In this document: positions 13,106-64,000 of the stretch, piece after piece
Numbering within the stretch: position 1 is the first letter of the stretch
Layout of the letters: the number at the start of each line of letters is the position of its first letter
NCBI GenBank assembly: GCA_907165135.1
Contig: OU015569.1
Coordinates: 10,664,001-10,728,000 of the forward strand
Direction: 5' to 3'
DNA: 64,000 nucleotides
Source of the DNA: Oikopleura dioica
Lineage: Eukaryota > Animalia > Chordata
The notes under the pieces: model-generated
What the model saw: only the letters and a program-made list of their open reading frames with translations
Databases searched by the model: none
What the model was told of the DNA's origin: nothing
Position numbers and translations under genes: made by a program

Positions 13106-14700
13106 TCAGAGCCGTAGATGCGATGAGAGCTCTTTCATCGCAAGATCGAGCTCGTCTTTTAGGTTTTGGCGGATCTTCTCGGACTTACTCGGTCTCGGGG
13201 CTTCTTCGAAAACTTCGTCGTTTGCGTGAGTTTCCTCAGAACGAGCTTTTGGCGCGGCTAAAATCAATGCTTGAAATCAAGGAAGAGAAAACAGCGGTAA
13301 AGCTTCTTACGTTGGATGGGCTCCACGATTTTTGTTAAATAGTTGGCAGGAATGATGCCGGAAGCACCCGTCGAGTTTTGCCCCTCGTACCAATTCTTGT
13401 CGATCTTGCTCGTCAATTCAAGAGTCTCGCCTTTTGTCAGCCGAAGATGTCGCTCAGATTTGGCTTCCAGATCAAAAGCCGCCACCGCCGAGCCTTTCTT
13501 CAGCGGCGAAGGAGAGCTCACACTCGTCAATGATGAGCGATCACTGCTTCGTAAGTAAGAAAGCTAAAAATTACAAACTTAGATTTCCTAGAATTTGAAA
13601 TTTACGTGATTTTTTTCCTTCAAGTTGAAGACAACAAAAAAGTCATCGACAATCCAAATCGTAAAATCAAAGCTGTTGATACTCAAAATTTACGAAATCG
13701 TAAATAGCAATCGATCACGATTTTTAATTTCGAGTTTTTCATAAAACTTAACCATCCATGGTTAATTCTGAAAACGTACGTGGCATTTTAACGCCTAGAT
13801 ATGAGCGTTGTTTAGTGAGAGCTTTATGATCTCTACAAAGGTCAAATAAATCAAAGTGGCGAGAACTTACCGGGACCATTCCGGTCATGGATCCTTTTCT
13901 GCACTGCGCCCATTGTTCATTTTTCACTTCGTCGACAGTAATTTTATCATTTCGCGAGACGGAGAGTTCCCGCTCGTTTCGCGCTTGGAAGTCGAACACT
14001 ACAGTAACCGACGAATTTCGCCGAGGAGATTTGGAGTAGACTTCGAGATCAGAAGTGCTTGACGGAATCAGATTTCGTCCCGCAGTCCGCAGAAAAGGAC
14101 CCGCGCTACTTCGGCCTTCAGGTGCATTCGACCCGGAAAGCTTCTAAAACTGGATAACCAAAATTCATTCCGTTAATTGCTGTACCTGTCGATTTTCTGA
14201 AGAGCTTCGGCGAGATGCTCGAGCACTGAGTTTCTCCCTAGTCGAGCTTTTTCGTAATCTACTGGCGATTTGTTCTTCATCTTCGAAAAACTTCTCCCAT
14301 GGTTGTGCAACGATTTCGGAGATTGACTCCTAGAATACAGAATTGTTACTGTCATGTTAAGGTGCTGATATGAAAAACAAAATCTGCGGAAAAAAATAGT
14401 TAAAGTTGTCAATAATCAATTTTGAGTAATTATTATTTAACATCTATTTCACTTGCGCGCAAGATCAAAGTCATTAACATTAAAACATCTTAACATTTGA
14501 TCGTTTAAAAAGTAAACCTCTTACAGCACCTTTGCCGCTTCTGCTCTGGCCAGGCTCATCCTCTTTTCTCTGCTGGAGTGGAAGACAATTTTCCTCTGAA
14601 ATGAAATTAATTCGGTCCTGATGACTCAGCAGCGACCCCAATTATCTCTAAAGTGGCTTTCTGATGGCGACTTTACAATGCCCATCTTCCCTATCATTCA
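13106..14700 (-). CDS. SH3 adaptor with two SH3 domains, possibly SORBS/vinexin-like; 5' end unresolved
   Basis: SH3-1 FDFQARNERELSVSRNDKI...WAQCRKGSMTGMVP; SH3-2 AFDLEAKSERHLRLTKGE...NWYEG...GIIPANYL; upstream PWEKFFEDEE. Confidence 0.65.
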
Positions 14701-15787
14701 CTTCCCGACAAATGAATTGTCATTGACCCGCAGGAAAAAAGTATCACACTTTTCAAGTTCATCAATTTATAATTTCCGTCAATAAGGCGCCGTTAAACGT
14801 ACTCCTCAATGACATTTGAATGTCATCTACTCATCAATTATTAGTCTCGAAATTAGATAGTAGAAAATCTAATTTACGAATGACTTGAAAAGTTTACCTC
14901 GGAAGGTTCATTTTCAGCAATATATTCAGGCGCGGGATTCCACTCGTCAATCTTCCCTGGCCTTGGCTTCTCCATCGCTTCGGAACGGATGAAATCAGGA
15001 TCTCTACGTCCAAAAGAAATATTTCATGGCGCGTGGGGTGGTTCTGGTCACTTCCGCTCTCACTGAACAAAGCCTTGTCAGAAGCGAACGATTTAAACAG
15101 TTGTTGTGACAGGAACTGGGCACACAAGAAAAAACGAAGCACGCAGAATCGGAATCTCTTGATTTTACTTAAAACTTTAATACTTCCGAAAATGGGGAAA
15201 GTTCTGCTTTTTTTTGAAAAGGAAATTTTAGCCTCTGGATGCACCGTGGCACCTGGCCAAGTGTCAGTGATCGCCCTGGAATAAAAAACTAAGGATAAGC
15301 TACCGCATGGACTGATGTAGGAATCGCGCCAAGGATACATAGGCAAAATTCGCCTTCGGGGAATTTCACGAATAATAACAAGCAACTAGCGCGATAACAT
15401 AAGTATGCCAAGAATGATAAGCTCATCCGCTCGATCCGTAATAATCCAAATAAAAAGTCAGCTTCAAAAGAAAGCGCTTTGAAAATTTCGAAATTTCAAA
15501 ATTTCAAATAAGCTTGGCTGAGTTGTATTAGGATGAAAAATCACTGTAAAGGAGGGAGCTGAAATCAATCATCAAGCTTAGGAAATTTGGTGATGGAACG
15601 CATGACGCGCGTGGCGAAAATCCTCAAAAAGTCGGTGAACATATCCGAGCAACATCCATGTCTCGGGATTATGAGTCCATGTTCTTGTGGGGTATTTATA
15701 CCAGCGTCGATGCCACTCTAAATCAGTTCACTTGAAAATTTAAAAATTTGTCAGCTTTTCCAATAAAAAGAAAAAATATCGAAAAAA

Positions 15788-35584: not shown

Positions 35585-38500
35585 ATGGACGCTTTTGCTA
35601 CGTTCGGGGCTCTGAATGATTCCCAGAGCAACGGGCCCCAGAAGCAGCAATTCTTCGAAAATGAGCTCGCGCAGGTTGATAATTTGACTGGCAGTGGGTC
35701 CGTTCTCGAACCATCCCTCGATCCAGCGGCTTATGACGAAGGAGCTGTTGGCGGACAGACCCAAAAAGAACTCGACCAGGTGCGCGCGCTAAAATTGCAG
35801 AAAGACGCGATGGGAGCGCAGCATTCCGGCAAGATCGACGAAGCAGTCGCTCTTTACCACAAGTTGCTCGACACTGGCTTCGTTCGAGATTCAGAAGATG
35901 GCCATCCGGGGCACCGAATGAAATACATCGCGTTCAAAAACATTGCGAAAATTCTCCCGCCGGACAGGGCAGAAGAAAGCATCAAATTCTACCTGAAGGC
36001 GAGCGAAATTGACAGCTCAGAAACGCAGCTCTGGTGGAAGCTCGGAATGAAAGCGCTGGAAATTGGAAACGTTCTTTTAGCGCACAATTCTTTCGCAAAA
36101 GCCCTTACCTTATCCGACCGGCATTGGCCTAGTATCGACAAAATTTTATACACGGGGCTGATTTTAAACAACTTCCGGGACATAATCAGACGGGCTCTTG
36201 CTGCACTCCAACTTGACCGGAAATACGGCACCGCTCGTCTGGCGTTGCTAAAAATCCGCGACTTTTATCCGATAATGTTCGACGATCCTGAAGACTTAGA
36301 GACTGCGGAGTCGTTCGATCTGGAAAAATGCACCGAGCGAGATCAGAAAACATTCGACAAGCTTTATTCGAGATATGAAAAACGATGGATTGAGTACTGT
36401 AAATTCACCCCACTAGATACACCTCCAGAACTACTTGAAACTCCGAATTATAACATTCTTGATGTTAAATGCAACAAGTACTCGTTTTCGAGCATCGGGA
36501 AGAGTCTCATAAGAAGTTTGGAGAAATTCGATGAAAAGGATTTCGACAGGATTTCTGTTGCGCATTTAGCTGGAAAGAAAAGACCTTTCAAAGCGATTGA
36601 AAATGCTCAAATCTATCATATTGACACGAAAAAGAGAAAGAAAGACAAATCACTCAAGCTGCCGAAGAAAGACAGAAACAAGAAGGCGCTGGAAATAACT
36701 GAACACAGCTCTGCCTTCTCCCTCGTCATTCCATATTTACTGCCTCACGAATACCGTGTTGAGTTCAACGATTGCCTCGGATCATCCCTAAATGAATCGG
36801 CATTGGAGCCCGAGCTGATAATTTCGAATGCAAAAGTCGAATCAGAAAACGAGCGTCGCTTTATGGTCGTTTTGAGGGAGCAAGAACCGACGATGCTTCT
36901 CGAATTCTTGAGCTTCAAATCTTCGAATCGCCCTTTAAAGATATTTACTTTCATTCGCGATTTCTGTCTCCATCTGACTGGGTTGACATCGAATCAGTGG
37001 AGTAACTCATTGAAAAATAATTTCATCACGCTTTGGAAAGCGCTTGAATCGCGGCGCTTCGTGGAGATTGTCCTGTCGGACAATGTTCGTGCGGATATCA
37101 TGGAAATGAAGCCGACAAAGATTGTTAGATTACTTCAAGATTTCAAAGGATACCTTCTCTTTGCCGAATTGGAAGTGGACGCGGAAATGGTCAGGCGAGG
37201 CTTGCGCTTGGGGCCGGCATGTCTCTCACCAGGAAACGACGGGAAAGATTCGCTGGACGATCCAACGAGGTCGAAAAATCAAAGACTGGCTCGGTACATC
37301 CGGCAGATGTTCATGTATCCCTCGGAAATGTACAGTGGAAACTGCACCGAGGTGCGCCTCCGTCTGATGTGGCTCGATGCGAAAATGTGGGTGCTGAGAA
37401 ATGATGCGAAATTCATGCTCCAGCGGCTAATGGACATTCAAGTCTTTCTCGTGAAAAACGATCACTGGGAAGTCAATATTCCTAATATCAAGGAAGCCCC
37501 TGTCATTTCACTGGCAGAAACCGAGAAGCGAATTCAAACGATTCAACGAGCAGAGCAGCGTGAAGAAGTCGAGCGACTCTACCAAGATGGCAATTACAAA
37601 CAAGTCGCTGAACTGCTCTGGGTGACGTTGAGGCTAAAGCCGAGCACAGCGGAGATCCAGCCTTTTCCACAAGAACGCGCGAATCAGCTGTGCTTGTTAT
37701 TGAACTCGCTTTCCTTCATCGCGCAGAATGACGAGTTCGGCTGGAAAACCTGGGCTCAGGGCATCGAAAGAGCGTTTGCCGAAGTAGCAGCTCGGATCAG
37801 AGTGCGGCATTCCTTGCCAGACTGGGTGAATGCAGCCGGCCAGTTGTGCTTGAATTTTTTGGAGCTGGATACAGACGATTATTCCACTATCTTCGAAGGG
37901 ATGAGCAAAAGCGAAATGGGCCGTTTTCAGCGTTCTCTTGCTACATTTTCCGCCGCTCAAATGGAACTCGGGCCAGAACCGGCTGTCATTCGCCGCTCTT
38001 TAGTTCCAGTTTGGCTCATCGGCTACCACGCTCTAAAGTCCATAAACGAGCTAGAAAACGACGAGTCAGACAATCGGAAAATCTCTTCTGAATCAAGCGC
38101 TTCGGAAGAAAGCCAGAAAGAATTCGATGAGGCGACATTCGATATGAAACAACTGCGCTTTTATCCTGATCTGGAAATAGCCCCTTGTGTCCAGTTGTTG
38201 ATTACGGCGCATTCTGAGCTCGGGAGTTGCAACTGGTGCACAGACGGAAACGGAAGTCTTTTGAAGTTCATCATTCCAACTTTCAACGCGCTCCGGAAAA
38301 AATTAAAAGCCGATCCGGATGGGCTTGATTCGGCCAAACCAAAAATTGTGAATCTTCTGAACAACGAACTTCAACAAGCAATCTACTGCTTCGTCCAGTT
38401 CCCTGCAAAAAAACCAAAATCAATTACGGATCATCGGAGTACGAAGATCCCGCTCAGCTGGCAAAATGTCGTTTTAGTTTTCGACGTGTTGTTTCCCGAG

Positions 38501-41412
38501 GAATTGCCCCAGTTTGACTCGGTCAAGTCGAATTCCATTTCCAGCGAGTTAGCTTCTTTTATCAAGAAATGCATTCCACTGATTCCGGATTGCGAGTTTT
38601 CGAAAATGAGACTTGGTTATTCAAAAATAATAAGGGCGACTCACGAAGCGGCTTTGGACGATTCTTATGGCGATCTAAAGTCGTGGCTGGAAATGAAATC
38701 GGCAGATTCGCCGCTCGAGAATTTCTACTATCTACTTGCCGATTACTGTATGAAGAACAACTCGAGGGACGACGCGGTCAAGTACTATTTCATGGACATT
38801 GGCTTTAATCCTCAACGAATCGACTCCTGGGCGGCGGTGGCTCTTTGCAAAGCGGCGGAAATCGACGAAAAGATGCGATGTTTTGATTCCAAGGGGCAAT
38901 TCCTGCCGATGAAACTGATCCACTGTGCGATTTTCTGTTTTGAAAGAGCGCTGGAATTGGAGAGAAATGGCAAAATCCTAATTGAATTTGGCCAGATGCT
39001 TTACTGGCTCGCCGGATATGACTCCGAGCAATCTCACGCGTATTACCAGGTAAGAAAATGTAACAGAATTCAAGTCTTGACTCGTTTTTAAGAAATCGTA
39101 TGCATTATTTGAAGAAGCGCTGGCAGTTGCTCCAGAAGAAGCTTGGCTGACCCACTACATGCTCGGCAAATTGTCCGAAAAGCTGAGAAAAGACACGGAA
39201 TGCTTGGATCACTACCACAACGGGCTCGAGTGGATGCATGAATTTGCCAGTTATCCAGCTAAAATTCAGTCGAAACTGAATTCTGGTTCTTTCAATCATG
39301 AGACGTTGGAAGTCTTCTACAGAATAACAGCATTTATCACGAAGAGATACGAAGCTGGAGAAGACGTCTTCGAACTGCGCGGAGTTGTTTGGGGCCTCTT
39401 GCAGATGCCAGTTTTCACAAGGAATGGAGAAGAAAAAGTCGACCTGAAAAATGTCAAATTCGAGACTGCCGCTGATGTGATTCAGCAATGCATCCGCAAT
39501 TACGAGCTGATTCTCAAACGATATCCGCAGCATTATAAATCGTATTATCGGCTTGCCAAGTTGGCTTACCACGCTGATAATCCATCGCGTAAGTCTAGCA
39601 CACACATATTTTTCTTTAAAACGATTCTAGTCGCTAAGAAAATAATCCTCGTCGAAAAAAATTCCTCATCAGACAAGAAAGAACAGACAAAAGCCGGAAA
39701 ATTTATCTTCAACGATGTTGGCTCCCTCTTTGGCGAGCGCAATCGCCACAATTTCTTCGGAGGAATCTGGAGAACTCCCTGTGAAGATATTGAGAGGCCC
39801 GGAGCGTTTTCCAGGCATTTGGCGAAATGCTGCCGCTTGGTTGTATTGTGCGCCGAGAAAACTCATGATATTGTTTTGCTGGCTACTATTTTTAGGTACA
39901 CTCATTTGCTGTGGTGATACGGCCTAATTCTTCGGCTTGGAGGCCGAAGGATTGATGCGTGTAAGAACACTGATTCTTCGGCATAAACCGAAGAATGAGT
40001 GATAAAAGATGCACTGATTCTTCGGCTAAGATGAATTTATTCACAGATTCCTGTGCCCCTAACCACGGGGCTCCGCCCCTTAGGTCCTAAAATGCCGGGG
40101 TCTAGTCTATGGTTACTTAGGGTTACCTTCGGTAACCCTAACTAACCCTAGCCTATCCCCCTCGGGTGAATTAGTTCTGTCATTTTGCCCAGTGCCCCCT
40201 AACACTAACCTCAAATTATAGAAAGTACTTATTGCTAAAATGTGTTTTTTTTTTTCTAGAAAATGTTTTTTTTCATAAGGGATGACTCATAGGTTGAAAT
40301 CAAAGATTTATCAAAAGAATTTTATTAATGGATTCTAGAAAATTTGCCGAAGAATCACTCTCAATTTTATCATTAATACTTCGGTTCAAGGCAATTCTCA
40401 ATTGCCGAAGAATCAGTGTTATTGAAAGCATCAATTCTTCGGCCTTGCCGAAGAATCAGCCCATACCACGTTTGCTGTTTATGCATTTACCCAAGAAATT
40501 TTAATTGATCGATGCTATTAACAAGACAATTAAGTGCGCTGCAGAGAACGCCCGACGCGTCCAAACGATACTTGAAGGAAGTAGACCGGGAGCTCATTTA
40601 CAAGCCGATTATTTCGACGATTTTGAGCTGCCAGGAACTTATGATCAAGCAGCAACTGTCGCACATTCCTGCTCGGAAGCGCTTAGTTCAATTTCACCGA
40701 ATCACTGAAATTTTACAGAAGAAAATCATCGGCAGCGAGACTTTTTCAAAGGTTGGAATTTTAAAGTAAACTTCCTCGAAGTAAAATTCTCTCAGCTTCA
40801 AGAATTTATGAAGAAAGCCTTTGCGCTTGCTCAGCCCAGCCAAACTGAAAGTAGATCAGCCACTTTGGAAACAATCAACAAGTACGTCAAAGCAATCGTG
40901 GCGATGGAAAAGGCAATTGCCGAATCACCAGATGCATCTGATGATGTACAGGTAACGAGGAGGAAATATGAAGTGTTATTAAACGCTCCCTTTTAGGCCT
41001 ACTTGAAAAAGAAACACGGCGACCAAATACAGACCTCCATTTCAAAAGTGACACCACTCGTGCCTGCACCAGCACTGCCAAAACCAACCATACCTCCAAA
41101 AGTAGTTCTTATTCCTAATAACCAAATGTAAGAGCTGCTTTTTAGAACGAAACGAGCAGGCAAGTCGTTACTGTAATTCAACCATCAACAGTCATCGATC
41201 TCACCGGCAGTTCGTCTCCAAAATCATCGACCGCAGCGACGAGTGTAAAACAGACTTCAACTGCCGGCCCGATAAATCCGCCACTCGCAAATCCAACTCC
41301 ACACCTTTCCCCTTCCAGTATAGCCGCATTGTTTGCCGTCGACTACAGCAAACTTAACGATCAACAGAGGATCCTTTTCGAGAGTCTACGAAGACATCTG
41401 AGCAATTCTTGA
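35585..41412 (+). CDS. CABIN1: Calcineurin-binding protein cabin-1 (HIRA complex), shortened C-terminus
   Basis: N-terminal TPRs (QLWWKLGMKAL, RHWPSIDK), WCTDGNGSLLKF, FYYLLADY, NPQRIDSWA, HYKSYYRLA, NFFGGIWRTPCEDIERPGAF, LQRTPDASKRYL. Confidence 0.9.
39912..40468. mobile_element. Mutator-like non-autonomous element, 557 bp, degenerate ~130-bp TIRs, 9-bp TSD, in a CABIN1 intron
   Basis: Repeated attcttcggc/gccgaagaat motifs at both ends; catttgctg (39903-39911) versus cgtttgctg (40469-40477), one mismatch. Confidence 0.75.
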
Positions 41413-50950: not shown

Positions 50951-53900
50951 ATGATCTTGTTTTTCATTTTATATTGCGGCTCGGGCGCTGCCGCAGATGA
51001 TAATCCAAAAATATTGAGCAGAGATGGAAGGTATGATCTCGTCATCGTTTAATATTTGATCATACTTTTTGAAATCATCGATACTTACTAGTAGGTCAGT
51101 AACAGCTAGTAACTAATCCTTCAGTTTACAATTTCTTGCTGGCACGGGGAAAAATATTTCATTTTCTGCTGGTGAGGGAGCCTCAGTTTGGGTTGGCGAA
51201 GAAGACATTATCTCCGCTCTTGACGATTTTCGTCGAGTTGAGCAAAGCGTGAACTCCTTGAAACAGAAGCTAGAAACTGATAATTGCGGCAACAACCCCT
51301 GCTACAATGGAGCTGCGTGTGTCTCTGTCTATGAAGGCTACTACTGCGATTGTCCAAGTTACTACACCGGGAGAACATGCAGAGAAGATTATAACGAATG
51401 TGCGGATTCTGTTATGGCTGAAAAACTCTGTCTGAACGGTGGCACGTGCGAAAACCAAACTCCTGGTTATTCCTGCGCATGCACAGCAGAATACGACGGC
51501 AGTCAATGCGAACGCGCCTTCGACGATTGTGCCGATGATTTGACGAAGTGTGACAAGGGAATTTGCGCGGATGGAATAAGAAGCCAGGCGGATGTTGCCA
51601 ATTTCACATGTATCTGCAACGCGGGCTGGCAAAAGACTGACGACGGCATTTGCTCGGCAGATATCAATGAATGTTTGAGCTCACCATGCTCTGTTGGTGT
51701 GCAGTGCTACAACACACCAGGCAGCTTCTTTTGCGGCCCCTGTCCTCACGGATATCAAGGTAAGTTTGAATATTTTTGATGTTTATTCGCACTTTTTTGC
51801 ACAGAATTTAATAAGGGCGTTGTAAATTCGAACTGTGTTCAAGTTCCAGTAATCGTACTTGAGATCGTCGCACATGCGGCAATACTTAGTCTGGCTAGCA
51901 AGAGCACAAGAAAAGAGCAAAATCAAGACGATTGCTTTTTGAATCGTAACCTTCATCAGAAAGGGAAAAAACTCAGATAGCCATCCTCCGATCAAGCAAC
52001 TGTATTTGAAAAGAATACCAGTGCATGATATTATGGCGATTCCAAGAGCCTCTTATGATACACTGACAAAATCTATAATTTATTCTTATTTACGTAACAA
52101 AAATCGATCATCATCTTATCTTCAGGCAATGGCTTGCGATGTGATGATCTGAACGAATGCCTTACCAACAATGGTGGATGTTCTACGTCTCCACTTGTCC
52201 AATGTATCAATACAGTCGGTTCCTTTTCTTGCGGTCCTTGTCCACCTGGTTATACTGGCGATGGCTTCACTTGTGATCCGACGTCTCCTTGTATGGTCCA
52301 AAATGGCGGCTGCTACCCCGACGCGACCTGTACGCCCGCTCCTGAACTCGGGCTCAACGGAGTCACTTGCGACTGTCCACCCGGGTACTACGGTAATGGT
52401 TTCGGACCAGAGGGCTGTCAGCCTTTGCCACCCTGCGCAGAGACTTGTCAAAATGGTCTTTGTTTCATGAACGAAGTGTGTGTCTGTTTCGAAGGATGGA
52501 CGGGTCTATCCTGCGATGTAAATATCAATGATCAAATTTGCGAGTCTAGACCCTGTGCTAATGGAGGTCAATGTAGATCCAGTGAGCTTGAATGGTGGTG
52601 CGAATGCCCTGCTGGATGGGTCGGTGAAACTTGCGAGGGACAAGCAAACGAATGTGGCGGAACATACACTGTCAACTCTGGCAACATTGGATATCCCCTC
52701 TCTTCTGGCAATTATCCACACAATGCTGAATGCCTCTGGACTATCCAAGTCAACAGAGGAGTAGGAGTGCATTTCCACTTTGATCAATTCTCTCTTGAAG
52801 GGCCTTACCCCTCGTGTCCTTTTGACGGACTTAGAATTTATGACGGACCAAGTGTCGAGTACGGACAGCTTCTTGGAGTTTGGTGCGGAGATAATGCCCC
52901 TGTGGATGTATTTTCTTGCTCGAACTACGCCTTGCTAGATTTTTACTCTGATTCATCTGTGAACGCTGGAGGCTTCCGAGTTCTTTTTGAGCAATATGAT
53001 CTAACCGGTGAGGATTGCGGTTGCGGTGGCGCATTCATCGACGTCGAAAGTGGTACCTTATCATCACCAAACTATCCTTTGGGTTATCCGACCATGGCGG
53101 AATGTTTCTGGACAATTTCTGTTCAACCTGGGTTTGTGTTGAGCCTTGCTTTTGATGCCGTGCAGCTGGAAGTAACGACAAATTGTATGAACGATTGGGT
53201 GGAAATTCGCGATGGCCTGTTGCCATACGATCCTGTTTTGGCGAAAGTCTGCAGTTACGATCAAGTCCCATCCAATTTGATAACTTCTGGTCCAGCAGCA
53301 CATGTGCATTTCCATTCCGACGATAATCAAGCTGAAGATGAGCAGGGATTTGCAATGTATTGGACAAGAATAAGTGATCCTGACAACTGTGGTGGTGTGC
53401 TTACCGATGGCGCAGGTAGTATTATGTCTCCGGGATATCCACAAACCTATGGAGTGGGCCACACTTGCTATTGGACTATTGTTGGAGTTCCAGGTGATCA
53501 GATGGCACTTCAGTTCACAGATATCGATATTGAAAACAGCGCGAATTGCCAATTTGATTACGTTGAGATCTTTGATGGGCCAGCTGAAGACTCGCCTACT
53601 TTAGGAAGATTCTGCGGATTGACTATTCCAAGCGAGCTTGTCACATCTCAATATCAAATGTTTGTCGCTTTTGTCACCGACGACAGTATTCATGGCCGTG
53701 GATTCTCTGCCGATTACTACACAAAATGTGGCGGTACTTATACTCAGAACAACACTTATATCAGCAGCCCTGGTTTCCCGGGAGTTTACGATCACGAAGT
53801 CGACTGCATTTATAATATCATTGCTCCAGAGGATTTCGTTATTACTCTGACATTCAATTATTTTGACGTGGAAGGCATCGATAATGGCGGTAATAACATT

Positions 53901-56900
53901 TGCTTCTTCGATTGGGTGGAAGTTAGAGATGGAAATACGGCGACATCGCCAGTTCTCGGCCGCTTTTGCGGTCCTCAAACACCGGAACCACTTCAATCAA
54001 CCGGGCAGTACATGTACATTAATTTCAAAACCGATGCTTCTCTCAGCGGTGATGGCTGGCAAGCAGTTGCGACCTTTGACGATCTAGGGACTGGTGGTTG
54101 TGGCGGTGTTTTCACAGCTGAAACTGGTCAAATCTCCTCTCCTGGGCATCCGAATCCCTATCCTCATGGTGCCAACTGCACGTGGTATATAAACGCGCCT
54201 TCTGGAGACGTCGTTCAGCTAGAGTTCAACAGTTTCTCATTGGAAGCTGCAACTGACTGCCGATGGGACTATGTGGCTGTTCATGACGGCATGCATCCGA
54301 CAGACGATAACGAGATTGCCAAGTATTGTGGCAATGACATCCCTTCGCGACAATACTCGACTCAAAATCACATGGTCGTCAGATTCGTCAGTGACAATTC
54401 AATCCAGGGTTCGGTATTTTGAATTCGCAAAATTATTCGTTTTTCATTTGAATTTCTATTTATTCGTTTACGAATATTCTCTAATGAGCGAATATGCAAA
54501 ACGAATGAAAACGAATTCTCTCGGCGAATTTTTCAGAAATTCAGCGAATTTCTCAAATATTCGCTTTGCCGCGCGCTCTGATTGGTCGGGCTTTGACGTT
54601 GCGCAGCCTATAATTTTATTTTCACCGCCCAAATAACCTTATAGCTCGCGGGCGCCACCCTTTTCTCGCCCGCGGCCCTGGAGTTCAGCCAATCCAGGGC
54701 TGTACGCTCAATTTCGAGCGAATATTCGCCCGAATAGGCGATTCGCGAACAATCGCTCATTCGCTTAAGAAAAGAGCATATTCGCTGCGTGTATTGGCGA
54801 ATTTTTCGACGAATTCAAAATACCGAACCCTGATTCAATCGCCAGCATCGGCTTTCAGGCTACATACACACTTCTGAACGCTACTCAGCAATGTGGAGGA
54901 ACTATTGACTCTCCATCAGGCGAGCTAGTTACTCCTGGATTTATCTCAGAGAGCAATTATCCGACTTCACGAGATTGTACCTGGCTGATTAATGCTCCAG
55001 CGCAGCAGCAGATTTATGCCCAGTTCAATTATTTCCAGCTCGAAGGTGGTGCAAATTGTCCTTACGATTACGTTGAGCTGCGAAACGGCGAGTACGAGGA
55101 TTCATCACTTATTGGCAGATTCTGCGGCTCTGTCTATCCACCTAATATCACCACGACTCACAACCATCTCCGAGTCCATTTTTACTCCGATTCGTCGGTC
55201 ACTTATCGCGGTTTCCGCATGGCATACGATGCTACAATCGACGGTTGCGGCGGAGACATCGTCGCTTCTATTGGAGATCTTCACTCTCCAAACTATCCAT
55301 TTGCATACAACCACGCCGCCGACTGCTTGTATCATATCACAACTTCTGCCGGAGCAAGAATCAATTTCAATTTCATCGATTTCGATTTAGAAGCAGCAAG
55401 CTGCAGATACGATTGGGTCCAGATCTTTGACGGCCCTACGCAGGCGTACAATCCGCTCAGGAAACGTGCTCAATTTATTGAAAAACATAAATTTCTATTT
55501 ATATTCGAAACATTATTTAAACTCAGCTGCCATTATTCGTGGGTCTATTAAGAAAATAATTATTGTAATTGATAAATTTATTATCACCAAATTACGTTTA
55601 AAATTTATTTTGCAAACATAAATTAATTCTTCGATTATAATTCATAATGAAGTAAGTTTGTTATGAACATGTCTCCAAGCGATCGTCTTTGTGGAACTGG
55701 ACTACCGGATCAACTCATGTCAACTCAAAATCAAGCAACTGTAGAATTCCGAACAGATGCCAGCGTCTCTGGACGAGGTTGGCGGCTTCACTTCGATACG
55801 ACTAACAACAATACCATTGGATGGCCGTTTAATGGTTACATCGAGTCGCCAAACTATCCCTTTGACTATCCAGATAATACAACATACGAGTGGAGAATCT
55901 ACGCGCCAGTTGGAGCCACAATCACGTTATATTTCAACGCGTTCTCTATTCACAACATCGCAACAATCGGCTACTGCTCTGGAGACAGATTGGAGGTCTA
56001 CGAAGGAGATCAGCGAGATAATGACAGCAGAATAGCAATTCTTTGCGGCGCACAACAGCCACAAGCAATCACTTCTACTGGCCAGTCACTTCTTTTACGA
56101 TTTAAGTCCAACGAGCTTTATTCATCAAGCGGATTTAGAATCAATTACGTTATCGACGCTTGCACCGAGGAGCGATCGGCAGTAAACGGACCAGGAACCA
56201 TTCAAATCAGTAAAAATGAGCCATCGCAATGCTACTACAGGATTTCTTCTGAACCAGGCACCAAGATTCAATTGCGTCTCACAGCCATGCAGGTCGCTAA
56301 TACTGCTTGTGAAGCGTCTAGCCTCCGTGTCTACAATGGCGATTTGCCTGTTAGTGACTTTCAGCTCTTAGAAATCTGTGGAAACCCAAGTCTGCCGAAA
56401 CAAACTCAGAGTACTGGATCTGAAATGATTGTCGTATTTACGACAGATTCTGGAAGTAACTCTATGAGTGCTGTTTATCAATCTCTTGCTGGTGGATGCG
56501 GTGCGCATTACATCAAAGAAGAGGGAACTTTCACAAGTCCTAACTATCCAAATACTTACCCGCACAATTCTGACTGTGAATGGCTGATCGATACATCAGA
56601 AGGAAACACTGTCAATCTCTACTTTACCGATTTCCATCTCGAAGGCTCTGGCTCTTTCTGCTACTTTGATTACGTTCGAGTTTATGATGGTGCAAACAAT
56701 ACTGCTCCTCTGTTGGGAACATACTGTGGTAACTACAGTCCCGAACCAGTTCGAGGAACGAGCAATGAAATGTTTGTTCATTTCCAATCCGACTCAAGCA
56801 TCAGCTACGGAGGATTTTCTGCTTCTTTCAACACAGAAACTTGTGGCGAAATCGTACAAGCTGATGAAGGGGCTGGCTCCATTTCATCAAGCAATTATCC

Positions 56901-59900
56901 CGACTTCTACGACTTCAATACTGAGTGCAGATGGACCATCAAAACTGTATCAACGGAAAAAATCCTGCTTGTATTTAGCCATCTGGATATCTGGGTAGAC
57001 ACATATACAGGCAATACGGACACGTGCCAGAGCGCTGATTATATACAAATTTATGAAGGGCGAGAACCAGACAGCACAACACCTAAGTATTGTGGTACCA
57101 GGATTCCTCCTCGATTCGAGTCTGCAGGCAACACAGTCCGTGTCTATCTCAATGCGAAGACCTCCCCGAACGGCCAACAGCGGCATGGTTTTTATGCTAC
57201 ATACAGTACTGCTGTTGATACTTGCGGCGGCGAGTTCTGGGCAGAAAGTGGAGCCTTTACCTCCCCGGGATACAGTAGTGGGGCTTATCCAGTTGGAACA
57301 ACATGCGAGTGGTTATTGACATCATCTCCTGGTAATTGGGTGGCCATCAATTTTGATGATTTTGATCTGCAAGCACCCTCGATATCCGGAACTTGCTACG
57401 ACTACGTCGAGCTCCGTGAAGACAGCTCAACTGGAAAACTCATCAATAAGTTTTGTGGCAGCAACCTTCCGGCTAATGTGACAACTTACTCGTCACACGT
57501 GATCTATGTGAAATTCTACAGTAACACCGCTACTGTTGGCCGCGGATTCTCCGCTTCTTGGTCTCACAGCTACGGTGGCTCCCTTGTCGGCTCAGGAACT
57601 GGACAAATTGCTAGCCCTCTTTATCCGCACTCGTATCCAGTCAATCTCGATGTGACTTGGACACTGTATGTCCGCTACAATCATATTATTCAATATGAGT
57701 GGCTTGCGTTTGCTACAGAAGCAGGAAGTGGAACTTGTGTGAATGATTACGTCATTCTTTATGATGGCCCAGATCGTTCAGCGAGCCAAATAGGACGATA
57801 CTGTGGACAAGAAATTCCCGAAAATGGCGTTACAGAGACGGACACTCTTACAATTTACTTCAAGAGTGATGCTTACTTTACTGATAGTGGATGGTGGATC
57901 AACTGGACCGACGCTGCGACAGGACACATTCCTGATGATGCTGATCCACCAGAGCTAGAACCTAATACTTGTGGAAACGACTATGTAATTGCTCCTGACC
58001 ATCCGATGCCATTGATCATGAATTACTCTCCTAATAAATACCCTGCTGGCATGGACTGCTATTGGAATTTGTATGCAACGAAAGGCTCGCGAATTCTTTT
58101 CACTGTTACTTATCTCGACTTGGAAGGCACAACAGGCAGTTCCTGTTATTTCGATTACATTCAGCTCTTCGATGGGCCGAGCAACAGCTATCCTGAGATT
58201 ACCAAGATTTGCGGTCGAACGACGAGTCTACTCCCGATCAAGGCTTCTTCAACTTCAGATATGATGACAGTTAGATTCCGCACCGATAGTTCGATAAACT
58301 ACCAAGGATTTAATGCGACATACGAGCGAATGTGTGGTGGAACGAAAAATGCTCGCTCTGGAACAATCATGTCACAAAACTATCCAAACGGCTATCCGGA
58401 TAACACGGACTGTGAGTGGCTTATCGAAGTTACTAATGGACTCACTGTTGACGTCAACTTCAACAGCGTCTTCAACATTGACTCTGGAAACTTGGCCTGC
58501 AACGAGTCTGCTGACTACTTAGAGCTGCGAAACGGAGCTGACGACGATGCTCCTCCTCTTTCGCCTTCAACACGAAATTCGGGCGACGCAGATGCGTATT
58601 TCTGCGGTAGTACCGCGCCAGTTGCAATGTCAAGCAGCGGTAACCAGATTAAAGTTCGTTTCATTTCCGACGCAAACCACACTTCTGATACAACAACATA
58701 TGCTGGTTTCCAAATGTCCTGGAATGCTGTCGGAACCGGTTGCGGCGGAGAATACGAAATCACAGACGAATCGCCAACAGGCTGGTTCACCACGCCCAAT
58801 TATCCGGACAACTACGACCTTAATGATTTCTGTATTTGGACAATCAGAGCCGGTTATGGAAAACAAATTCAACTCGATTTCAGTGGCGATTTCGATATTG
58901 AGGACAACTCAGCTTGCGTCTTTGACTATGTGAAAATCTACGATGATGAGTTTAATCACGACGAACCGACACTTGGAACATACTGTGGTACAAACCACCC
59001 AGATACTGTCAGATCGCTTGGAAACGTAATGGTTGTCAAGTTCCGCTCAGACGTCAGTATCACGGGACGAGGATTCAACGCGACATATTCTTCACCAAGA
59101 TGTGGTGGAATGTATACTGGCATGGGCGGAATAATTTCTTACGATGACTACCCTGATCCTTACCCTTCGGACGCGTTCGACTGCGAGTACGTTCTTCGAG
59201 CGCCTCTCTACCACAATGTCCAGGCCAGTTTCTCAGGAGAATTTTCCGTTCCTGGCAGCATGTTTGCCCAGTGCAATGGCGGGGACTACGTTGAGTTCCG
59301 TGACTATCGAGACGCTGGGTTCTTCTACGTGAGAAATCCTGACTCAAACTTAGTTGTTACTATCAATTCGGCGGTTAATTCTGACAATGTAGAGGCAAAT
59401 ACACATCAAGGACTTTACTCACAGCTCTGGCTCTGGGATTTCGACCACATTGTTTCAGTTTACGATAACACGAAAGTTCTAGCTGCTGATGGCGCCAACC
59501 CTGATGCAAATACAAACGTCCACGTTGAGTCATTCACAGGAGCAGATTATCAACGATGGGAAAGAACAAGCGATGGAAAACTGCTGAACAAAAACTCCAC
59601 CAATCTTGTTCTGACCATTCTCGGCAGTGGTAATGCAGGTTCGACCTTGGGACTGAGAGCAAATGCCTCAAACAGCGTCAATCAAGTATGGGAATTCGAA
59701 CACACTTACATCGGTAGAAGACTGGGCATTTTCTGTGGAAACAACATTCCAGCTGCGACGATTTCCTCTGCCGAGCGGGCGATGATTGTTCGACATCACT
59801 CTGAAAACGGGAACTCCGGTCGCTGGCAAGTCACTTGGGAAGCTTCGGAGGATATCTGCGGCGGGCCAACAACCGGCAGCAGTGGTATTATTGCCTCTCC

Positions 59901-62900
59901 AAATTTCCCGAATCAGCCGGATTCAAATCGTGGCTGTACGTGGATGATAACTGTCAACAGTGATCGCTCCGTGAAACTGCAGTTTATGGACGTTAATCTT
60001 GGAATTATGTCCTGTTATTATGATTATGTCAAGGTTTACAACGGTATTCGGGATCAATCGCCTCTTTTCTGGGATGGAACTATCTGTCAAAATCGTCTTC
60101 CTACTCACCCGTTCATATCTACTGGAAATACAATGAAAGTCGAGTTCGAAGCCAGTGGCTTTGGCTATAACGCTGGCTTCCGCGCTAACTATACGTCTGA
60201 CGAGCCTCGTTTCTGCGGAGGAGAGCTCAATATCGCCAACACTACAGATATCGGCTACATTGTTAACCCCGGCTATCCGGATGAATATCCCAACAATACC
60301 GAGTGCGAATGGTTGATCAGCACAGCCGCGAGAGCAAATCAAACCATTTACTTCGAATTTATTGAGCTCGATCTGGAGGACCACGCGACATGCGAGTACG
60401 ATAGAATTGAGTTCAGTGCTCCTTTAATTGACTCTCTTGCTGTTTACAATACCGTCTGCGGGCGTCGCCGACCTCTACCGTATTTCGCTCTGCCGACAAC
60501 CTCCGTCGACGTGGTTTTCCAATCAGATGATTTAGGCCACGGTACATTCAACATGTCCTACGGTATCAAGCCTTGCGGTGGTTATATTTCTGGATCTACT
60601 CAAGGAACTATTTGGTCGCCCAACTATCCCGACACATACAACCATGACGATTACTGCGTGTGGCTTATCGAAGCAGAGCCAGGTCATTCCATTTCCGTTC
60701 AATTCGATCTTAACTCATTTGATGTCGAGCAAGGCGGCAGCGATTGTCGCTTTGATGCCGTGTCTCTCTACAACGGTCCCAGCATCAAGTCACCAGAGAT
60801 TGGTCGCTACTGCAACAACACCATGCCTCCATCAACAGCTGTTCATACAAGCTCCAACTATCTAACGATTCTATTTACGTCAGACTTTTCAATCTCTCAC
60901 GGCGGCTTCGTCATCAACTGGGAAACAGACAACTCAGGCTGTGGAAACCAATTGATTCATAGCGAATATGGCTCACTTCAAAGTCCGAACTATCCAAACA
61001 CCTATCCTGCTAACTCGAACTGCTTCTGGACGATCTTCACCAATCCATCAGACCATGTTAAATTTACCTTCACGACATTCGACCTCGAAGGAAGTATGCC
61101 ATCTTGCTCCTGGGACTATGTCACTTTCCACAGCGGTGACTCTCTCGATGCACCAATGATAGGAGGACGTATTTGCGGTAGTGCAACGCCCGAACCCATT
61201 GAATCTTCACAGGATAAACTGTTTATTCGATTTAGAACGGATGGCTCTGTACAGAAGAACGGCTTTGCTGGAAATTGGGAAACGGTATGCGGACAAACAA
61301 TCGAATCTACCGGAGAACCTGGCGAGTCGGGCATGATCCTGTCACCGAATTACCCAGTTGATTATCCCAACAATTATGACTGCGAATGGAAGCTTGTTGG
61401 TTCCGACACATCCGATTTCGTACGCGCTCATTTTGTTGCCTTTGATCTTGAAGGTGGCAGCTCCTGCCAATACGATTCCGTCAGCGTGTACAGAGGCGAT
61501 CAGAAGGTATCTTCTCAGCTTCTTGGAAAATACTGCGGTACCGAGATTCCTCCTTCGCAATCGGTTCATGGAACTATGCTCATCAATTTCGTCTCTGATT
61601 TTATCATCACCAGCACTGGTTTCCGAATCGACTACGACTTCGAGTCTTGTGGCGGCACAAGATCAGCTCCCAGTGGCGAGATCAACGGACACACGCCGAC
61701 TGACAACTGGAACGAGCACAGAAATCTCAACTGCACTTGGACGATTGAAGTCGATGAAGACAAAATCGTTGAGCTTCGTTTCACACTCTTCGACATCGAG
61801 TTCGATACAAATTGTAACAATGATTATATTGCGATTTACGACGGACCAAGTAAGGTCGGTTATCAGATGATCGGAAAGTACTGTGGAAGTGTTCCTCCTG
61901 CTTTTGTGAGAAGTACAAGCAGATATATGACTCTTGAATATGTCACTGATTTTTATGAAACAAAGGTAAATTCATAACTATCCTTCAGTTATTCCTCTAA
62001 ATAATTTTAAAAGGATGGTTTTATTGCTGAATGGCGACAAACGATCGGCCCCCTTTCTGGCTGTGGTGGAGAACTCACTACTAACACTGGTAGTTTCTCA
62101 AGTCCGGCCGAAAATCCAGGGGATAATTACGAAAATAATCTCAACTGCAACTGGAGAATCTCGGTTAGCGACAACAAAATCATTCAGCTGGAGTTCAGTG
62201 ACTTTGTTTTGGAAAACCATTCTTCTGGAGGCGGGTGCTACGATTACGTTGAAGTCATTGACGGACAACTACTCACAGATCACGTGATTTACAGACAATG
62301 TGGCAATCAGACAAATATCGGTGTTATAAGATCGTCAGCTAACTTCATGATTGTACGATTTAAAACTGACGCTTCAATAACAGGTGCGCGATTTTTGATG
62401 ATTTTAAATTGTAACAGTGTTTATTTCTAGCTGCCGGATTCAACGCTTCTTATACCGTTGCAGATCGTGACTGCGGTGCAACCTTCATTGCCAACTCTAC
62501 TCTTACCGGATTTGGCTACGATTTCACTGGAATAGCGGGTAACTCGCAGATCTACCGCTGCAGCTGGATCATCTCGGCCTCAAGTGACACTCGTTTTGTT
62601 GACATGAGGACCCTTTCTCTCGATGTTCCCGGCTCTAGCGATTCAAGATGTGCGGATGGATATGTCGAGTACCGCGATGTCGGACTTTCCTCCCAATATG
62701 GCCAAGTGCTGCGATACTGTAATGCCGATGGAGGCACTGTGCCACCCGAGTTCTTTTCGCTCTCCGAAACAATGTCCATCACTTTGAGAAACGCGAGGAA
62801 CCAAAATTCTTCCTTCACCGCTCAATTCTCAGATGCCGACTGCTCACGAACCTACACCGCAATGAACGGACGCATCTTTTCCGCCGGATGGCCTCACCAC

Positions 62901-63697
62901 TACGCGCAATATTTGAACTGCCAGATCAGGATTCAAGTGCCAGAAGGAAACAAGATTCAATTGTACTTCAACGAATTCGACGTCGAAGATGCTGAGGACT
63001 GCAATATGGACACGTGTGACCACCTAGATGTCTAGTAAGACTTTTTTAGTGCTCCAAAAGTAAACTCAACATTTCAGCAATTCCACGACTATCCAGTCTA
63101 ACAACTTCATCGGTCGCTACCACGGCAATCGCTTACCCTCTCCAATCTTCCCCAACACGAACAACGTTCTCCTCCACTTCGTCTCTGATCAGCTCGTTTC
63201 TGGACGCGGTTTCGATATTTCTTACGCGGCCAATATCCAGGGCTGCGGTGGAAACCTTACAGGCACTCATGGCAACGTCTATTTGACTGGCTATCCAACT
63301 GATCCGTATCCAGCGAACCAGGTCTGCATCTGGCACATTACAGTTCCGCAGAACAGACAGGTCACGATTCACTTTAGAAATATCAACGTCAGGTAGCGAC
63401 CAAATCGAATACTCGCGAAATATACATATTTCTTCCCAGGTACAACATCGAGAGCAACTCTTGCTACAATGACTACGTCGCCGCCTACGAAGGAATCACA
63501 GACACTGGCCCTTGGCTACGCGCTTACTGTGGGAGAGGAAGTGTCTCCGATGTTTCAGGTAATGATAAAAACTGAAAGCTGACAACTCCATGTTTCTAGC
63601 TCAATCAAATCAAATGACGCTGGTCTGGCGCGCCGGGGACTCATCGGACTCAGATCGAGCTGGCTTTACGGGTTGGTGGATCGAGTGGGAGTCTTAG
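50951..63697 (+). CDS. CUBN: Cubilin: signal peptide, N-terminal stalk, 8 EGF, 27 CUB, plus one inserted ricin-B domain
   Basis: MILFFILYCGSGAAADDNPKILSRDG|SLQFLAGTGKNISFSAGEGASVWVGEEDI resembles the cubilin N-terminus. I counted 8 EGF and 27 CUB domains, the vertebrate cubilin architecture. No TM helix; stop at 63695-63697. Confidence 0.93.
51783..51956 (-). CDS. Nested antisense secreted mini-protein (57 aa, CxxC...CxxxC) in a cubilin intron
   Basis: MKVTIQKAIVLILLFSCALASQTKYCRMCDDLKYDYWNLNTVRIYNALIKFCAKKCE*; pyrimidine-rich AG acceptor ~45 nt upstream; AATAAA overlaps the stop. Confidence 0.6.
   Translation of the reverse strand: MKVTIQKAIVLILLFSCALASQTKYCRMCDDLKYDYWNLNTVRIYNALIKFCAKKCE
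54405..54832. mobile_element. hAT-type MITE, 428 bp, inserted into cubilin coding sequence (CUB5)
   Basis: Perfect 23-bp TIR cagggttcggtattttgaattcg/cgaattcaaaataccgaaccctg; perfect 8-bp TSD ATTCAATC at 54397-54404 and 54833-54840. Confidence 0.96.
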
Positions 63698-64000
63698 TTT
63701 TAGTATTCACTGTAGTACTGACCCTATTGTACATTTTGTCCTTGCAATAAATACGCCTAAGTGTAAGCTTGAAGATGAAAACTTTATTTAAAAAAAAATG
63801 ATAATTCTTCGAACAGGGCATCGAAATATTCAATTGAAAGGATGATTTTTTCTTCATCTAAACAGAAATAGTTATATCCAGCGACACTCACCTTAGGCGA
63901 TGATATCATTGGGCACGTCAGGAAAATCGGAAATGGACATGGCTATTGAATCGCGCTGCGTTTTCTGCTTTGAGGATCTTTTTCAAACAAGGAATCTGAA

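Follow-up and report, generated by a model that had tools for sequence, protein, structure and literature searches.

How can an animal receptor with an almost fixed domain layout take up a whole foreign domain, and what might such a guest do there? Cubilin serves absorptive gut cells as the multi-ligand endocytic receptor of the cubam complex and as the receptor for intrinsic factor-cobalamin. Few large animal receptors have a domain layout so rigidly conserved, with 8 EGF repeats and 27 CUB domains from molluscs to mammals. The question is raised by a 64,000-nucleotide stretch of the genome of the larvacean Oikopleura dioica (assembly GCA_907165135.1, contig OU015569.1, positions 10,664,001 to 10,728,000 of the forward strand; this whole stretch is hereafter the window, and positions without a prefix refer to it), where a cubilin gene carries a complete ricin-type β-trefoil set into a loop of the 17th of its CUB domains (CUB17). 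We consider it likely that this is a real nested domain of O. dioica cubilin, that it was inserted once, before a duplication of the gene, and that it adds a putative binding surface to the receptor.

The guest occupies 59320..59715 on the plus strand and consists of 132 residues, with no cysteine and two N-x-S/T sequons. Its limits (F77 to G208 of the piece that starts at 59092) were taken from a full-length MAFFT alignment with nine other animal cubilins, which was used in place of a BLAST comparison of CUB16-18 with invertebrate cubilins, where the alignment slipped by one CUB repeat, the insert being about the size of a CUB domain. The original prediction, made from the letters of the DNA, had placed a ricin-B domain inside CUB17 at 59311-59705; this is the same segment, with each end 9-10 bases off, which is immaterial. 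In isolation the insert (59311-59706) matches the whole Ricin_B_lectin profile of Pfam (PF00652; 38.3 bits against a cut-off of 29, E-value 1.8e-9, profile positions 3-126 of 126) and also matches PF14200 at 28 bits. The three QxW repeats that had been reported within it were located, all on the plus strand, as QLW in subdomain α (59422..59430), QRW in subdomain β (59551..59559) and QVW in subdomain γ (59683..59691); their spacing is that expected of a three-fold β-trefoil with one QxW per subdomain.

The CUB domain itself is continuous on both sides of its guest. The N-terminal half of CUB17 (CGG... to ...DYVEFRDYRDAG; 59101..59319, +) covers positions 1-66 of the Pfam CUB profile, the match ending directly before the insert, and the C-terminal half (RRLGIFCGN...) follows at 59716..59856 (+). 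With a profile made from this gene's own CUB domains, which was used for CUB numbering and split positions, the split domain is the 17th of 27 and its halves are collinear (59101-59304 corresponding to profile positions 1-65 and 59716-59838 to positions 72-112). The guest replaces the short loop of 4-5 residues that in other animals connects strand 'DYVEIRD' to strand 'LGxFCG'. Structure prediction for CUB17 plus insert, based on an alignment (A3) of orthologues and ricin matches, yielded a β-trefoil of 12 strands, with predicted local distance difference test (pLDDT) values of 84-94 for most of it, placed between five CUB strands from the N-terminal half and four from the C-terminal half. The structural core that aligns to solved trefoils spans 59317-59706 (+), and Foldseek gives target-normalised template modelling scores (TM-scores) of 0.80-0.85 to ThreeFoil and to CBM13. 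The Pfam match, the CUB profile and the domain numbering therefore all bear out the earlier reading of a ricin-B domain within CUB17. As in nested domains generally, the parent runs on either side of a compact guest, the two ends of which are close together. However, it differs from the known ricin-type domains (PF00652/PF14200 and CBM13, with ricin B, ebulin B and the CBM13 of Streptomyces xylanase 10A as representatives) in lacking cysteines and in sitting within a loop of another domain, whereas the known ones have terminal or tandem placement. With the N and C ends of the β-trefoil adjoining each other, the domain would ride on the CUB loop as a side-branch and leave the CUB sandwich intact.

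The gene that hosts this domain (provisionally 52134..64000, +) encodes EGF repeats followed by CUB1 to CUB27. Its upstream frame (52134..54422) contains matches to EGF, EGF_3 and EGF_CA along with five CUBs, and 55663..61977 (+) is a single uninterrupted open frame of 2104 residues that is rich in CUB domains by Pfam; the lack of an intron around the insert, as noted in the original prediction, accordingly holds for this lineage. The profile built from the gene's own domains recovers 27 CUB matches on the plus strand, from the start of CUB1 at 52653 to the end of CUB27 (~63244-63545), with about 470 nucleotides devoid of a CUB match (54425-54892) between CUB5 and CUB6. When the whole-length protein was used as a query and the best 120 of 371 matches were listed, the named proteins among them were almost all cubilins, from fishes, amphibians, lamprey, coelacanth, sea star, sea urchin, two hemichordates, scallop and snail. 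These vertebrate, echinoderm, hemichordate and mollusc sequences share 29-36% identity with the query, mostly over 97-100% of the 2104-residue frame, and the nearest match with a name comes from the Norwegian assembly, a partial protein of O. dioica (87-95% identity). CUB17 aligns with its counterparts position for position, and in a maximum-likelihood tree the Oikopleura clade is sister to the vertebrate cubilins with a Shimodaira-Hasegawa-like approximate likelihood ratio test (SH-aLRT) support of 94. For amnionless, the genome has one exon-sized match (PF14828, 32.5 bits against a cut-off of 30.4; G000:C4:6778452-6778562), and a comparative study of 2026 describes cubilin and amnionless as markers of endocytosis in the posterior gut of bilaterians, Ciona included (PMC12768270). 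Together the layout, the whole-length matches and the tree identify the host gene as a true cubilin orthologue of O. dioica, in agreement with its earlier designation.

A foreign fold within so conserved a receptor could in principle reflect an error of assembly or scaffolding that fused a fragment of a lectin gene to cubilin. No point in support of this was found, and it is refuted by the recurrence of the same layout in a contig of a closely related organism (organism B), in the Norwegian assembly GCA_000209555.1 and in two ENA metagenome contigs from different samples; we therefore give it practically no weight. These sequences also reveal how the segment evolves. The DNA contig of organism B, compared over 58600-60400, has 33 substitutions and no insertion or deletion; nine of the substitutions fall within the insert, eight of them synonymous third-position changes and the remaining one a change of Ser to Thr. 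In Norwegian O. dioica (FN655985.1) the frame of the insert is open and its protein is 89% identical to that of the window, with a proportion of synonymous differences (pS) of 0.70, which is saturated, a proportion of nonsynonymous differences (pN) of 0.082 and a ratio of nonsynonymous to synonymous rates (dN/dS) of about 0.04, similar to that of the neighbouring CUBs. The two ENA metagenome lineages (L001 and L017), which are 63% identical to each other, both retain the insert, with one single-residue gap each relative to the window, at identities of 73% (L001) and 72% (L017); the corresponding values for CUB14-20 are 56-72% and 47-61%. Shorter metagenomic fragments from further lineages likewise span the CUB-to-trefoil or the trefoil-to-CUB junction. 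The insert is thus retained in at least six lineages, its conservation is equal to or above that of the flanking CUBs, and long blocks of it, of a size to form surfaces, are nearly invariant between lineages. This pattern of substitution is strong evidence that the insert is a coding and selectively maintained part of the protein, and such constraint in turn implies that the domain has a function.

The public protein record from Norway offers a different account of the segment, namely that 59262-59657 is an intron, or an optional in-frame 'exitron', absent from the mature protein. That record, P0002 (NCBI, 'unnamed protein product, partial'), joins ...VPGS directly to ANASNS..., thereby dropping the equivalent of 59262..59657 (+) as a 396-nucleotide in-frame GT..AG intron (~380-775 in L002, from FN655985.1 of GCA_000209555.1), and both the GT and the AG are present in the window as well as in the Norwegian contig. 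Nevertheless, we regard this account as very improbable. The Norwegian DNA across the proposed intron is an open frame with 90% identity, and the purifying selection and saturated synonymous sites described above are those of coding sequence, with up to 73% of the protein conserved where the CUBs of the same lineages reach 47-72%. The proposed GT is missing in L017 and the proposed AG is missing in both L001 and L017. Besides most of the trefoil, the splice would delete a Cys and the 'DYVEF' core strand of CUB17, and its length is eight times the median of ~49 nucleotides for O. dioica introns (PMC8008620). Furthermore, L017 alone has a genuine short intron within the segment, a 44-nucleotide GT..AG intron (L017:8375-8418) that falls between the codons for Q and R in the second QxW (YQ|RW), with the frame continuing on both sides; given that a conserved frame is here interrupted by an intron of its own, the insert itself is not an intron. 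The intron of P0002 is therefore most likely a homology-guided misprediction, as a consequence of which that public protein record lacks the trefoil. The case carries a lesson for annotation, in that homology-guided gene prediction can erase lineage-specific insertions. Separately, the C-terminal half of CUB17 is interrupted in the Norwegian gene by an intron (L002 ~905-1130, after '...AERAMIVR') that is absent from the Okinawa window at 59790-59800, which on comparison of the two sequences is a presence/absence difference between cryptic O. dioica species.

With the domain placed in the protein, its distribution could be addressed. Among the 120 proteins listed, PF00652 is found in one only, the larvacean-like P0001, and the ricin domain is absent from the other 118 cubilins, vertebrate and invertebrate, among those matches; the statement that vertebrate cubilin has no such domain thus extends to the listed invertebrates, in which, ascidians not being among the cubilins inspected, the insert is not common. 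The full-length alignment shows a CUB17 loop of 4-5 residues with an N-x-S/T sequon in Amia, Lampetra, Latimeria, Acanthaster, Diadema, Ptychodera, Glandiceps, Argopecten and Gigantopelta, in contrast to the 132-residue β-trefoil of Oikopleura, and the ~130 columns of the insert are filled by the three Oikopleura rows only. The conservation of this sequon in nine of the nine non-larvacean cubilins aligned (YNAT, INST, RNAS and similar) is an observation in its own right, which suggests a conserved N-glycan at the CUB17 loop in other animals. An exhaustive profile-free search with the insert through 1.84 billion representatives returned 44 proteins, of which those at 60-77% identity are short cubilin-like fragments and the rest, at 43% or less, are generic multi-ricin proteins; none of the latter that were scanned with Pfam contained a CUB. 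A literature search in an incomplete library returned nothing on a guest domain within a CUB, on Oikopleura together with cubilin, or on cubilin together with ricin. The trefoil-bearing cubilin is so far known only from the Oikopleura lineages sampled here.

Further differing from other cubilins, that of Oikopleura exists as two paralogues. The second, paralogue B, lies on a different chromosome, on the minus strand at G000:C1:6602637-6612038 (loci L004, L018, L019 and L025) as one open frame of 3467 residues with 27 CUBs, intron-free over ~10.4 kb. Its CUB17 is also split, at profile positions 63/71, by 133 residues (C1:6605565-6605963). This insert has no match in Pfam; aligned by hhalign with a profile of the window-type inserts it matches end to end, over 127 columns, with an E-value of 7e-5 and 24% identity. 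The two inserts have in common a Y/F-F start, the 'LWxWD' motif, the second QxW and the 'EHT.IGR.LG.FCGN' junction, and each is the sole match of the other in the genome. The paralogues have diverged to about 29% identity over CUB17 plus insert, and both of them together with L001 form one clade with an SH-aLRT support of 100. Since both paralogues carry a homologous trefoil in the same loop of CUB17, the insertion appears to predate their duplication, and there is strong support in these comparisons for a single insertion on the larvacean or an earlier tunicate stem. The recent gain implied by the original prediction is hence replaced by an old event. Paralogue B additionally has its CUB25 interrupted by ~1.6 kb (reverse-complement positions 13363 to 14994).

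What the trefoil might bind is a separate matter. The original prediction had taken the three QxW repeats to indicate a glycan-binding module; however, QxW is a signature of the hydrophobic core of the fold and not a mark of the sugar site, and ricin-family sites that lack the sugar-binding Asp and aromatic residue are generally inactive, as is known of the sites in ricin B and CBM13. We judged the sugar-site residues from alignments to Streptomyces CBM13 (by phmmer) and to 12 other ricin domains. In subdomain α the Asp of the 'LD' motif is replaced by T and the stacking aromatic by N; in subdomain β the Asp is A or S, the aromatic is E, and the Asn is Y or H; in subdomain γ the Asp is T and the aromatic is R, while the N-Q pair is kept. 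The same pattern of loss is seen in every orthologue, and no subdomain has the full set of Asp, aromatic and Asn/Gln. Given that the Asp and the stacking aromatic, a feature of CBM13 and R-type lectins, are replaced in all three subdomains, canonical recognition of galactose or N-acetylgalactosamine (Gal/GalNAc) by the trefoil is unlikely, and the earlier glycan-binding proposal is weakened to that extent. 

These substitutions bear directly on the idea that the domain is a working R-type lectin, which would recognize Gal/GalNAc-type glycans and capture glycosylated food or microbial ligands. The ricin-type fold with its three QxW repeats, in a family many of whose members are lectins, is consistent with it, as are the sugar-bound CBM13 and the ricin and ebulin B chains among the closest solved matches, the N-Q pair kept before the W of subdomain γ, and the strong purifying selection, which shows that the domain does something. 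Against this, every orthologue has T, A or S, and T in place of the Asp and N, E and R in place of the aromatic in the three successive subdomains, and the trefoil of paralogue B, which keeps the Asp in subdomains α and β, no longer has either the third QxW or the aromatics. Hence we think it unlikely that the trefoil works in this way.

The absence of a nameable ligand site, with the canonical sugar residues gone, could also be read as a sign that the trefoil is a passenger or spacer with no binding role, kept only because its removal would misfold CUB17. CUB17 itself, as read from the sequence, is without the Glu that normally belongs to the CUB Ca2+ triad, a point that fits a passenger; the same lack, however, raises the prospect that the working surface of the CUB17 module may be the trefoil. 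A passenger would be expected to drift faster than its host, yet the insert is conserved at least as well as the flanking CUBs in two distant lineages, its long surface-sized blocks are nearly invariant, and it has been kept in both paralogues despite their divergence; a mere passenger thus seems improbable. We favor instead, as likely, the view that the trefoil is an extra ligand- or partner-binding module. It would supply the endocytic receptor with one more surface for a ligand or partner, most likely a protein, or a carbohydrate at a non-canonical site, rather than classical Gal/GalNAc. Beyond sugar binding, β-trefoils are known as protease inhibitors, as cytokines and as adaptors in toxin complexes, and if the trefoil is indeed a binding module, a protein or non-canonical glycan would be far likelier as its partner than the ligand of a classical lectin, for which the chance seems slight.

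Several points weigh against the proposal of a nested, binding trefoil. The orientation of the trefoil relative to the CUB in the model is uncertain, with a predicted template modelling score (pTM) of 0.59, and since the alignment behind the model of the paralogue included ricin sequences, that model is biased toward the trefoil fold. The branch of paralogue B is long (1.49), so that its placement in the tree is at risk of long-branch effects. On the side of expression, two oligo-dT RNA runs gave zero reads anywhere on 58600-60400 and are therefore uninformative, and a single marine metatranscriptome contig spans only 60076-60294, outside the insert; a word-based protein search with the 255-residue piece for transcript-derived fragments found P0004 alone, which is genomic. 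Since the gene model from Norway in the public record leaves out most of the domain, alternative splicing in some tissue is conceivable. Lastly, the function is entirely inferred, and despite the loss of canonical residues the trefoil may bind sugar at another site.

Oikopleura cubilin represents a clean and datable exception to an otherwise rigid layout, in which a whole foreign fold sits in a CUB loop and has been maintained by strong selection in both paralogues and across several larvacean lineages. It thereby demonstrates that CUB loops can tolerate a guest domain, and it provides a natural test case of a multi-ligand endocytic receptor acquiring a new binding module.

As to where the trefoil came from, the O. 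dioica genome contains 14 other matches to PF00652. An endogenous donor was considered and rejected, there being no match to the insert in the genome at E-values up to 1 other than the insert of the paralogue. The closest non-cubilin relatives in the protein searches are P0008, P0010, P0018, P0020 and P0042, the top four at 32-36% identity and P0042 at 27%, with E-values down to 2e-14 in the search of 1.8 billion proteins. The multi-ricin relatives share with the insert a 'QxWxWD' motif and an 'NV.[LV].S[FY].G' block. Two of them combine a PAN domain, several ricin domains and an ADP-ribosyltransferase domain, and are encoded on eukaryote-like marine contigs. The O. dioica genome encodes none of these proteins, and P0008, searched against it, has no match other than the cubilin insert. 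These marine proteins differ from cubilin and its guest in that they contain no CUB domains, have their ricin domains in tandem and in some cases keep the Asp. Two loci of this kind, L022:5001-9071 (on a 1.6-Mb contig of ENA ERZ25069866) and L023:417-4046 (from a Tara metagenome), encode large, secreted-looking PAN/ricin proteins with a C-terminal ADP-ribosyltransferase of the exoenzyme type. Outside cubilins, it is the ricin domains of these two that come closest to the insert.

The original prediction had argued that simple exon shuffling does not explain the insert, as no intron flanks it. This argument is weak: intron positions in the region vary between Oikopleura lineages, with one in the C-terminal half of CUB17 in Norway, one in the trefoil in L017 and neither in the window, and those CUBs of the gene that are still interrupted (CUB7, 26 and 27) are broken at profile positions ~60-73, in the same loop that holds the insert. 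The human gene CUBN has 67 exons, and its CUB5-8 are spread over exons 21-29, i.e. about two exons per CUB (PMC3462684). It is plausible that a mid-CUB intron captured a trefoil-coding exon and subsequently disappeared. A broader scenario would be a larvacean innovation that opened cubam to a new kind of ligand, such as something contained in ingested particles or in the animal's own discarded filter-house, with the domain captured from the secreted multi-ricin family of marine eukaryotes by exon capture or horizontal transfer and then kept in two very divergent paralogues; as a whole we put this forward only tentatively, as a conceivable but rather doubtful history.

Two minor observations concern other sequence of this genome. 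On the same chromosome as the window, locus L011 has a Ricin_B_lectin match of 35.7 bits at G000:C2:4757346-4757636 on the minus strand, reported to lie within an open frame of 1740 residues. Within the window, 35585-39091 (+) is an open frame of 1168 residues with no Pfam match at E-values of 0.001 or below.

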